DNA of 64,000 nt from Basidiobolus meristosporus CBS 931.73 (Eukaryota > Fungi > Basidiobolomycota): NCBI GenBank assembly GCA_002104905.1, contig MCFE01000036.1, forward strand, positions 141,584-205,583, read 5' to 3'. The notes under the pieces are model-generated. The model worked only from the letters and a program-made list of their open reading frames with translations. It searched no databases and was not told where the DNA came from. Below are positions 14,307-17,448 of the stretch, piece after piece (the first letter of the stretch is position 1; every line of letters starts with the position of its first letter). The position numbers and the translations under genes were made by a program.

Positions 14307-15097
<791 letters not shown>

Positions 15098-15357
15098 GGC
15101 GCCGCCTGGCCATCTTTGTCCGATCGATCTTCCACATCGCATCCCCCCTTTTTGCTTGGACTTCCACCGCTACTGTTTAAATACTTTCTAATTTATTTCT
15201 TAATTCTCACTGGCAATTCTAATAAACGTCCGTCAACTGGAGACTGCGGGGGTATTCGGGCGCTGGTCCCAACGTATTTATTCCTATCCACATTCAATCA
15301 TGCATTCTAAGCCAACGAAATTTATTAACAGGGCCATTCCGGTCTTGAATTCGAAAA

Positions 15358-15840
15358 CTAGATCAAGGTCTCGTAAGCGATGGGGTAGATGGTGGTGGGA
15401 GCGTTGTCCTTGGTGGAGACGTGGCGAGCGTCACGGGGTTGGGCGGGAAGACGCTTGAGATGAATGGTTTGGCCGGAGGCCTTGGCGTCCTTCTTCTTTT
15501 GGGCGTTTTCCTTGACACGACGCAAGAAATCGTCACGGCACTTGGAGTGCTTGATGTGCTCCACACGGATGTTCACACGCTTCTCCATGTAGCGGTTACC
15601 GACACGCTTGTTCACGATGACTCCGACGGAGGTCTTGGTGACGTTGTAGACGATACCGGTTCTGCCGTGGTAGAACTTGTGGGGCATGCCCTTCTGGATG
15701 GAGGCGTTGGCCTTGATGTCGACAATGTCTCCGACCTTGTAGGTCTTCAAGTAGGTGGACAGCTTGACGGGGCCATGTTCACGGAATTTCTGAGAGAACA
15801 GGTGGCGGGTACGAGCACGATAACCGAAGGAGTGGGGCAT
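15358..15840 (-). CDS. RPL21: 60S ribosomal protein eL21
   Basis: MPHSFGYRARTRHLFSQKFR...GMPHKFYHGRTG; uninterrupted 160-aa ORF with strong codon bias. Confidence 0.98.
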   Translation of the reverse strand: MPHSFGYRARTRHLFSQKFREHGPVKLSTYLKTYKVGDIVDIKANASIQKGMPHKFYHGRTGIVYNVTKTSVGVIVNKRVGNRYMEKRVNIRVEHIKHSKCRDDFLRRVKENAQKKKDAKASGQTIHLKRLPAQPRDARHVSTKDNAPTTIYPIAYETLI

Positions 15841-16201
15841 TGTTCACTAAAATAGAGACAAGAACTGGTTGAGTGAATGTGCCACCAAGTCTACACTACG
15901 CTAACTACCCCGCCCAACCACAGCTGATAAGTACCTGACACTGGTTTCTACCTTTAAAGCGCGTGAAGGAGAAAAGGAGGGATCCCGATTTTGCTATGTC
16001 CATAGTTTTGTCGATTCTTTGGGCCGAAAAAAAATTCAAGATCTCACAGGGGTCCTTCCCGCGCAGATGATCCACTGATTATTGGGCAGGACAAGGGTGC
16101 TCCAAGGTTTTTTTTTCAAACAAGTCACCGTCACTTAAAAATGTGGACTTTGGTTTATGATGCCGCCTTTTCCCTTGGTCGGACTTAAGTAACGGCACAT
16201 C

Positions 16202-16988
16202 ATGGCTCCCCCAAGAAACTGTATTCAGCATGAACAGGAATAGGATGATTTCAAGCGGTTGCGGTTGGAAATTCCCTTTTATTTTTTTTTTCGTTTTTTC
16301 CTCACAGCGACCTGTTCTTATGAAGAGATACTTAGCATATTCTCTGGGCATGAACGAATAAGACAGTCTAGCTAAACGTTACCGGAAAGTTCCTGCTCGG
16401 TATGAGGCACTGGACTTTACCGAATTGTTCTATTTTCTAGGCTCCAAGACCTACAAGGTTCCCAGACGTCCTTTCGAGAAGGAACGTATTGACCAAGAGT
16501 TGAAGATCATTGGTGAGTACGGTCTCCGTAACAAGCGCGAGATTTGGAGAATCGGATACACCTTGTCCAACATTCGTCGTGCCGCTCGTGAGCTCCTCAC
16601 TTTGGATCCCAAGGACACCCGTCGTCTCTTCGAAGGTAACGCCCTTATCCGTCGTCTCATCCGCATCGGTGTCTTGGACGAGTCCAAGGCCAAGCTCGAT
16701 TACGTCTTGGGTTTGAAGGTCGAAGATTTCTTGGAACGTCGTCTTCAAACCCAAGTCTTCAAGCTTGGTTTGGCCAAATCCATCCACCACGCCCGTGTCC
16801 TCATCAAGCAAAGACACATCCGTGTTGGTAAGCAAGTCGTCGACATTCCCTCCTTCGTTGTCCGTTTGGAATCCCAGAAGCACATCGACTTCGCTTTGAC
16901 CTCTCCTTATGGTGGTGGTCGCCCTGGCCGCGTCAAGAGAAAGAGAATGGCTTCCGCCGGTGGTGACGCCGAGGAAGATGAGGAATAA
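16202..16988 (+). CDS. RPS9: 40S ribosomal protein uS4/S9 (exon 1 16202-16220, intron 16221-16440)
   Basis: The spliced product reads [40 protein letters not shown]...[16 protein letters not shown]. Confidence 0.97.
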
Positions 16989-17448
16989 CTTCAGCAACCT
17001 TCTGTTCTATTTCACGAACCCTCTGTCTCAATAAAAGACATGATGAATTAATCTTTTAATCAACATTCTTGTGGCTGCCTAATTTGTTGACTAAAGTTTG
17101 TTAATCGGCCCATCGTTGCCGGATCATGAGGAATGTTTACATATGCAGCCGCATCCAATGGGCATGATTGCCCTCGGTATCTCATGGAAGAGAATTGCCG
17201 AATCCCATTGATCACCACAGCCATGATTGGGCATGGGAATGCAGAAAGGCTCTTTTTAATTCCCTGGAGCCGATTTGATTAGTCCATAGCACCAGGCAAT
17301 ATATGATAGAAATCTCCTTACACATGCCCATTTTCCCACCGATCGCTCCCCCATTTTTTTCAATTCATAATAAACCTGCATTCAACGGACTGGCATTTCC
17401 CAAAGCTCCCTTCTCTGTCTCCTTTCCTGCCGTCATCAAACTCACAGT

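Follow-up and report, generated by a model that had tools for sequence, protein, structure and literature searches.

A conserved fold pairing the 5′ splice site and the branch site in the first RPS9/uS4 intron of early-diverging fungi, a candidate cis-regulatory RNA

The introns of the yeast RPS9 genes, which encode the ribosomal protein uS4, mediate auto- and cross-regulation (Plocik and Guthrie 2012, PMC3315480), and covarying stems in the introns of yeast RPS9A and RPS9B raise the fraction of retained intron (Rangan et al. 2025, PMC12350175). In Drosophila, over-expression of RpS9 induces non-productive splicing, and animal RPS9 genes employ an alternative 5′ splice site (Drosophila) or cassette exons (vertebrates) together with nonsense-mediated decay (PMC3315480). 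In E. coli, protein S4 represses the alpha operon through a pseudoknot formed by the mRNA (Tang and Draper 1989, after PMC3315480). This report concerns the first intron of an RPS9/uS4 gene of Basidiobolus meristosporus CBS 931.73, located in a stretch of 64,000 nucleotides (nt) from contig MCFE01000036.1, referred to as the window. Comparison of 12 copies of the intron, nine from Basidiobolus and one each from Conidiobolus coronatus (L014), Spiromyces aspiralis (L015) and Gigaspora margarita (L016), shows an old fold under constraint: on either side of an invariant core, the entire branch site and some positions of a sub-optimal 5′ splice site are base-paired. The features of the locus, in window coordinates, are as follows.

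16202-16220, + strand: RPS9/uS4 exon 1, ATG GCT CCC CCA AGA AAC T, encoding MAPPRN plus 1 nt, in agreement with the public protein P0002
16221-16440, + strand: RPS9/uS4 intron 1, 220 nt, from GTATTC to TAG
16221-16226, + strand: 5′ splice site GUAUUC, non-consensus, with U at +5; GUAUUY in all 12 copies
16224-16238, + strand: 5′ arm of helix P0, in which UUCA (16224-16227) pairs with UGAA (16321-16324) and GAACAGG (16232-16238) with CCUGUUC (16311-16317)
16239-16310, + strand: variable loop closed by P0, containing a pyrimidine tract (16275-16303) and CACAG (16303-16307)
16311-16324, + strand: 3′ arm of P0, ending in the GAA that pairs with +4 to +6 of the 5′ splice site
16322-16358, + strand: near-invariant core GAAGAGAUACUUAGCAUAUUCUCUGGGCAUGAACGAA, 37 nt, with homologous blocks in L014, L015 and L016
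16324-16328 with 16341-16345, + strand: possible hairpin H1, AGAGA with UCUCU, possible in all copies and never varying
16333-16336, + strand: loop motif UAGC
16346-16358, + strand: apparently unpaired GGGCAUGAACGAA
16359-16383, + strand: spacer of conserved length (five copies have 25 nt), in which GCUAA (16371-16375) is conserved
16384-16421, + strand: branch-point hairpin, GGAAAGUU paired with GACUUU-A-CC, the branch adenosine (16419) bulged out
16422-16440, + strand: pyrimidine-rich tail and 3′ splice site UAG, the branch adenosine lying 21 nt upstream of the 3′ splice site
16441-16988, + strand: RPS9/uS4 exon 2, with Ribosomal_S4 and S4 domains (Pfam) and the stop codon at 16986-16988

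A close parallel is with yeast RPS9A and RPS9B, which share with this locus the uS4 host gene, a first intron near the start codon and covarying intronic stems (PMC3315480, PMC12350175); the yeast stems repress by blocking splicing, which is also what is proposed below. The yeast structure differs in being a putative pseudoknot near the 5′ splice site, for which no branch-site hairpin or GUAUUY is reported in the accessible portions of these articles, and in belonging to a single family, whereas the present element spans several early-diverging lineages. Animal RPS9 has in common the gene and the presumed output, a non-productive RNA; the animal genes, however, rely on poison exons or alternative sites located in other introns, whereas here no conserved alternative site is found and it is the constitutive sites that appear to be masked. 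The position of the yeast RPS9 introns probably differs from that of the Basidiobolus intron. E. coli S4 is orthologous to uS4 and acts on its own mRNA through a structured leader, as uS4 may do here, but control there is exerted on translation rather than on splicing, and the pseudoknot conceivable in the present RNA (UAGCA with UGCUA) is without covariation. In yeast RPS14B, RPL30 and RPL22B splicing is inhibited by the encoded protein, which binds a structure of its own pre-mRNA that includes or adjoins the 5′ splice site; the proteins and folds are different ones, and we know of no report of branch-site pairing with a bulged branch adenosine in these three. Yeast zipper stems begin further from the splice site and leave the splice signals free, whereas P0 starts at +4, covering +4 to +6, and a second helix covers the branch site. 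The likeness lies in a long-range helix by which the intron sequence separating the 5′ splice site from the branch region is looped out (for example RPS17B; PMC12350175).

Identification of the gene is based on exon 2, whose translation was used for the protein identity search and is 100% identical to the S-9 protein of B. meristosporus CBS 931.73 (ORY04334.1, P0002). Exon 1 was matched by way of this public protein, and the public gene model (L002, MCFE01000036.1) has the same exon/intron structure as the model given above. In total, B. meristosporus has four RPS9 genes (the window copy, L003, L004 and L005) and B. ranarum has five RPS9 loci (L007, which is syntenic with the window, L009, L008, L006 and L001). 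The nine Basidiobolus introns all lie at the same codon position, measure 170-241 nt and start with GTATTC, or with GTATTT in L009. Beyond the genus, introns at the same position were found in three further fungi. That of Conidiobolus coronatus (L014) has 258 nt, starts with GTATTC and contains the core ATGAAGAGACCTATAGCAGCTCTTCTGGACACGAACGAAC and the branch hairpin GGAAAGCA...TGCTTTACC. The intron of Spiromyces aspiralis (L015, Kickxellomycotina) has 401 nt, starts with GTATTT and contains the core AAAGAGAGAATCAGCAAACTCTCTGGACATGAACGAG and the hairpin GGGAAACG...CGTTTCAC, and that of Gigaspora margarita (L016, Glomeromycotina) has 464 nt, likewise GTATTT, with the core AAAGAGAGAGATAGCAAACTCTCTGGACACGAACGAATG and the hairpin GGGAAAGC...GCTTTACCC. 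The 5′ splice site GUAUUY is thus kept in each of the 12 copies examined. A covariance model trained on seven Basidiobolus copies and searched over 107 kilobases (kb), both strands, matched the window and held-out copies only, and each match fell inside an RPS9 first intron. Among held-out copies, approximate E-values were 1.8e-6 for L014 (at full length), 5.1e-6 for L005, 1.6e-5 for L001, 3.3e-4 for L016 and 2.4e-3 for L015.

The 5′ arm of helix P0 comprises intron positions +4 to about +18, and its partner is a segment ending in RAA directly 5′ of an invariant GAGA. Calculated duplex energies of the cognate arms lie between -7 and -16.8 kcal/mol in all 12 loci; examples are UUCUUUAAAA with UUUUAAAGAA in L008, UUCA(A)UGAUAUAU with AUAUAUCAUGAA in Conidiobolus and UUUCAGGC with GCCUGAAA in Spiromyces. 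When arms from different clades are combined, the non-cognate duplexes are mostly weaker than -6 kcal/mol. An arm-swap test was carried out with one representative for each of seven clades (5040 permutations), the shared UUY:RAA triplet being excluded. The cognate arrangement totals -58.9 kcal/mol against a permutation mean of -23.5 (standard deviation 7.2), and the identity permutation is the only one of the 5040 that attains the cognate total. At the splice site itself, position +6 covaries with the first base of RAAGAG among the 12 copies, as C-G in nine and as U-A in L009, L015 and L016. The loop closed by P0 differs in length and sequence in every copy, from about 30 nt in L003 and L004 up to over 200 nt in Gigaspora (30-220 nt overall). 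A pairing of GUAUUC with a GAAUA located 3′ of the core had also been considered; it fits Basidiobolus and Gigaspora alone and was superseded by P0.

The second helix is a hairpin of the form GGAAAGU...ACUUU-A-CC, present in every copy about 25 nt 3′ of the core, whose 3′ arm is the branch site, with the branch adenosine bulged. The branch site reads CUUUAC or CUUGAC; copies with CUUGAC carry GGCAAG in the 5′ arm, and L009 has AAAAU paired with AUUUU. In the nine Basidiobolus sequences 95.8% of cells are paired, with double changes in four of the eight pairs. With all 12 sequences 93.8% are paired, compensatory changes affect 4/8 pairs, and the covariation score was reached by none of 500 shuffles. 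Sliding the partner by one column, as a control, lowered pairing to 52-62%.

Between the two helices lies the core, for which the consensus across lineages is AAGAG-N5-UAGC-N7-CUGGRCAYGAACGA. In the nine Basidiobolus introns it reads AAGAG-N5-TAGC-N3-TTCTCTGGGCATGAACGAA, and the final 19 nt (16340-16358 in the window) are invariant. Mean pairwise identity among these nine copies is 0.90 for the core; in exon 2 it is 0.88 overall and 0.68 at third codon positions. Of the core positions 78% are invariant, as against 30% of third codon positions. The intron element is more strongly constrained than synonymous sites of the exon. The invariant 19-mer occurs once in the window, and a metagenome scan with it returned three matches (L010-L012), all unrelated and due to chance, one of which resembles a bacterial NusG gene. 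Within the core, hairpin H1 is neither supported nor refuted, because its pairs never vary. For GGRCAYGAACGA no conserved pairing partner was found among the copies, and it is probably recognised as a single strand. The spacer that follows carries, in the other taxa, a variable hairpin inserted at its 5′ end.

The structure of the intron is visible only by comparison. Folded alone, the whole 220-nt intron does no better than shuffled sequences (z = 0.31), and RNAalifold applied to nine sequences found just the invariant AGAGA:UCUCU stem, since MAFFT cannot align the variable loops. Several further candidates were set aside. A pseudoknot between the UAGCA loop and a downstream UGCUA can form 6 base pairs in Gigaspora and Conidiobolus, with 3-5 base pairs or none elsewhere, and shows no covariation; it is at most conceivable. 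A stem resembling the U6 internal stem-loop (UAUUCUC:GA-AC-GAAUA) is confined to Basidiobolus, as is a stem between pre-core and post-core sequences (UCUUAU:AUAAGA). A U12-type intron was rejected by eye, the 5′ splice site being without the AUCCUU core. Searches of Rfam 15 yielded no relevant family, whether for the region at E<=10, for the whole window at gathering score or for the Spiromyces core alone, and an RPS9 intron element outside budding yeasts is not described in PMC3315480 or in the fungal structured-RNA surveys PMC8216456 and PMC5640933. Among autoregulatory structures of ribosomal-protein pre-mRNAs, to which the element would belong, it stands out by the unusual breadth of its phylogenetic distribution and by the masking of two splice signals at once.

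Evidence from transcripts was taken from assembled Logan contigs over 15300-17100 in four runs; none of the runs on record as RNA covers the stretch, and assembled contigs drop rare isoforms. Exact removal of 16221-16440 (junction 16220/16441) is found in contigs of runs X3 and X9, one X9 contig having 4 differences in 388 nt against exon 2. Loose ends at 16441 bear the exon 1 of other paralogues, as in X3, where exon 1 of L004 is joined to exon 2, indicating that paralogue introns are spliced out at the same site. A near-identical contig of run X10, for which the library type is not on record, is unspliced across 16192-16406 and has two 6-nt deletions, at 16255 and 16278, both within the variable P0 loop. 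Separately, runs X1, X3 and X9 contain some contigs of very high depth over 16692-16944. With their many differences and loose ends, these resemble animal, possibly human, RPS9 mRNA in mixed samples and were left aside.

With moderate confidence, the intron can be regarded as a cis-regulatory RNA whose structure governs how the RPS9/uS4 pre-mRNA is spliced, with free uS4 as the likeliest trans factor in what would be a feedback loop. The fold would hide positions +4 to +6 of the 5′ splice site, which are contacted by U1 and U6, and the branch site, which is contacted by U2. A trans factor present in excess would recognise the invariant unpaired core and stabilise the fold; the precedents of E. 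coli S4, Drosophila RpS9 and yeast RPS9A/B make free uS4 the likeliest candidate. With splicing blocked, the reading frame of the unspliced RNA would stop after 13 residues, at TAG 16241-16243, and the non-productive transcript would be subject to nonsense-mediated or nuclear decay. With uS4 limiting, the weak helices would open and the whole intron would be removed (16220/16441).

Several points weigh against this proposal. Both the control of unspliced RNA by the level of uS4 and the binding of uS4 to the core are what we infer, and the sole unspliced contig (X10, 16192-16406) may be DNA. The E-values of the covariance model are rough because its calibration was shortened. Neoconidiobolus thromboides has an RPS9 gene (L013:1201-1811) with no intron after the PRN codons; this lineage has lost intron and element together, which makes the element dispensable in at least one lineage. 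Finally, a helix that links the region of the 5′ splice site to the branch region may promote splicing, as zipper stems do in yeast (PMC12350175).

This last point leads to the main rival, a purely architectural role in promoting splicing. P0 and the downstream fold would bring together the weak 5′ splice site and the weak branch site of an unusually long intron, much as a zipper stem does and without feedback from uS4. P0 does loop out a variable 30-220 nt and so brings the 5′ splice site effectively closer to the branch point, the contigs show the fully spliced form only, apart from the possibly genomic X10 contig, and zipper stems are known from introns of yeast ribosomal-protein genes (PMC12350175). 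The placement of the helices is nevertheless hard to reconcile with such an aid: P0 reaches to +4, within the binding site of U1 and U6, and the branch sequence is itself paired in the hairpin; either helix should impede recognition rather than assist it. Consensus splice signals would also be the simplest solution if efficiency were selected, yet GUAUUY has been kept in every lineage examined, and an architectural role leaves the invariant unpaired stretch of 13 nt unexplained. A constitutive splicing aid is on balance rather unlikely.

A different mechanism had been put forward in the original prediction, in which a regulated inner acceptor at 16307, with or without an inner donor at 16400, gives rise to a stop-containing isoform that is destroyed by nonsense-mediated decay. 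The sequence features themselves are as described there: an intron at 16221-16440 of 220 nt with the donor GTATTC, a pyrimidine tract at 16275-16303, CACAG ending at 16307 and G/GTATGA at 16399/16400. The join of 16220 to 16308 does read T|CG ACC TGT ... AGC TAA with TAA at 16373-16375. The description of the intron as long, with a weak donor, also holds when set against the three introns of the neighbouring Rac/Cdc42-like gene (three introns only), which by eye span 14342-14432, 14505-14565 and 14747-14806 (91, 61 and 60 nt) and have the donors GTACGT, GTAAGC and GTCAGT, all with G at +5. In most copies of the RPS9 intron a T-rich run with an AG after it lies a short way upstream of the core, and precedent exists in animal RPS9 genes, which use alternative splicing coupled to nonsense-mediated decay (PMC3315480).

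The proposed sites are, however, not retained among the copies. The donor GTATGA at 16400 occurs in no other copy, not even in the syntenic L007; its place is the variable apex of the branch hairpin. The acceptor at 16307 is placed in the variable P0 loop; in L007 it is shifted by 1 nt (CTCAAGG), and in L004 there is no AG before the core. No convincing branch site was seen by eye upstream of 16307. An in-frame stop is to be expected in any non-coding stretch, and the TAA at 16373-16375 falls inside the conserved GCUAA. Neither 16220/16308 nor 16399/16441 was found as a junction in the contigs of the four runs, which, as rare isoforms are dropped by assembly, is weak evidence against the stop-containing isoform. 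Inner acceptor, inner donor and stop are no more than chance, and regulation through the inner acceptor is very improbable. What stands of the original prediction is the general idea of RPS9 autoregulation through this intron, to which a constrained fold, kept across distant fungal lineages and engaging both 5′ splice site and branch site in helices, lends strong indirect support; the poison-exon or alternative-acceptor mechanism is not supported. For yeast and Drosophila, regulation of RPS9 that depends on introns is on record (PMC3315480, PMC12350175). The conserved anatomy favours blocked splicing, with intron retention, over an alternative 3′ splice site or a poison exon.

Another reading takes core and branch hairpin as cis look-alikes of those segments of the U6 and U2 small nuclear RNAs (snRNAs) that contact the 5′ splice site and the branch site, that is, as a decoy of the RNA core of the spliceosome. 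The succession [+4 to +6 pairing]-GAGA-N4-YAGCA-N6-CUG parallels ACAGAGA-UGAU-CAGCA-GUUCCC-C(UG) of U6 in order and spacing, the final UG belonging to the part of U6 beyond ...CAGCAGTTCCCC. The U6 sequence given in PMC3445587 ends in ...CAGCAGTTCCCC. Similarly, GCUAA-N8-[branch-pairing, bulged A] parallels GCUAA-GAUCAAGU-GUAGUA of U2 (Xenopus U2 19-46, PMC2199211), and covariation supports both pairings with the intron's own sites. The likeness was noticed after the fact, however, and the Rfam models of U6 and U6atac give no match at E<=10. Ungapped identity to the yeast U6 core (PMC3445587) is 11-15 of 23, and about 56 windows with at least 14/23 occur by chance in the 64-kb window. No analogue of helix Ia is seen, that of helix Ib (UAGC:GCUA) is without covariation and weak in several copies, and the stem similar to the U6 internal stem-loop is limited to Basidiobolus. 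There is thus only a slim chance that the core and hairpin are snRNA mimics. That U6-like and U2-like modules jointly occupy the reactive sites of the intron, so that the intron masks itself with a decoy of the U2/U6 contacts, open to locking or release by a protein, is likewise very unlikely, though by a hair less so.

Apart from these parallels, the 3′ arm of P0 contains CUGUUCU (16313-16319), an identity to U2 that we take to run on to CUGUUCUUAU in human U2. The match is probably due to chance and is present in the clade of the window only. In Xenopus U2 snRNA, as printed in PMC2199211, the same seven nucleotides are nt 40-46.

The weakest alternative is a stable small RNA, such as a small nucleolar RNA (snoRNA), hosted by the intron and processed out after splicing, which the original prediction had named as its own alternative: ribosomal-protein introns are frequent hosts of snoRNAs and the conserved part measures about 100 nt, but no Rfam family matches, inspection by eye revealed no C/D or H/ACA boxes in the conserved part, the fold of the whole intron is no better than that of shuffled sequences, and splice site and branch site themselves take part in the conserved helices, which points to a role in the pre-mRNA and leaves a hosted RNA the least probable reading of all.

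Some observations concern the annotation of the copies and their neighbourhood. The public model of L005 (ORX92909.1, P0123, from B. meristosporus MCFE01000253.1), with the N-terminus MASICD, seemingly starts at a wrong ATG inside the intron; the canonical exon 1, ATGCCTCCAAGAAACT, lies 40 nt upstream, at L005:1461-1476, and is followed by GTATTC; the P0 of this copy is strong (-16.8 kcal/mol). In B. ranarum, a normal MAPPRN exon 1 is found at L006:1194-1212 and L007:1202-1220, upstream of public models of 166 amino acids (P0124) that begin at an internal ATG and leave out exon 1 and the conserved intron. The annotated protein of L003 (P0121, 179 amino acids) has a different, shorter C-terminal part (…FALTLPMRKRMAS…), due either to a mis-called extra intron or to decay of this copy, and its intron element is intact. 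In the window, RPS9 (+ strand) is arranged head-to-head with RPL21 (- strand, 15358-15840). The divergent pair also occurs at L003, L004, L006 and L007, that is in most Basidiobolus copies, and at L016 of Gigaspora margarita, and is a very old arrangement of ribosomal-protein genes, presumably with a common promoter region. As local background, the branch sites of the Rac-like gene read TTGAC, CTAAC and GTAAC and lie 14-22 nt from the 3′ splice site.

To our knowledge, most known cases in which a ribosomal protein controls its own pre-mRNA by feedback come from budding yeast. The RNA elements concerned seldom extend beyond a family or subphylum, a point made for fungal structures by Gao et al. 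(2021, PMC8216456). The RPS9 intron presents one element common to Basidiobolus, Conidiobolus, a kickxellomycete and an arbuscular mycorrhizal fungus, in which the position, the odd 5′ splice site and two covarying helices have been kept. As an undescribed RNA family, it would rank among the oldest intronic regulatory RNAs known in fungi. The putative masking of the 5′ splice site and of a branch site with bulged adenosine around an invariant unpaired core offers a testable model for the gating of splicing by uS4 or another factor, and the element allows asking whether the RPS9 circuits of yeast and animals descend from it or arose independently.

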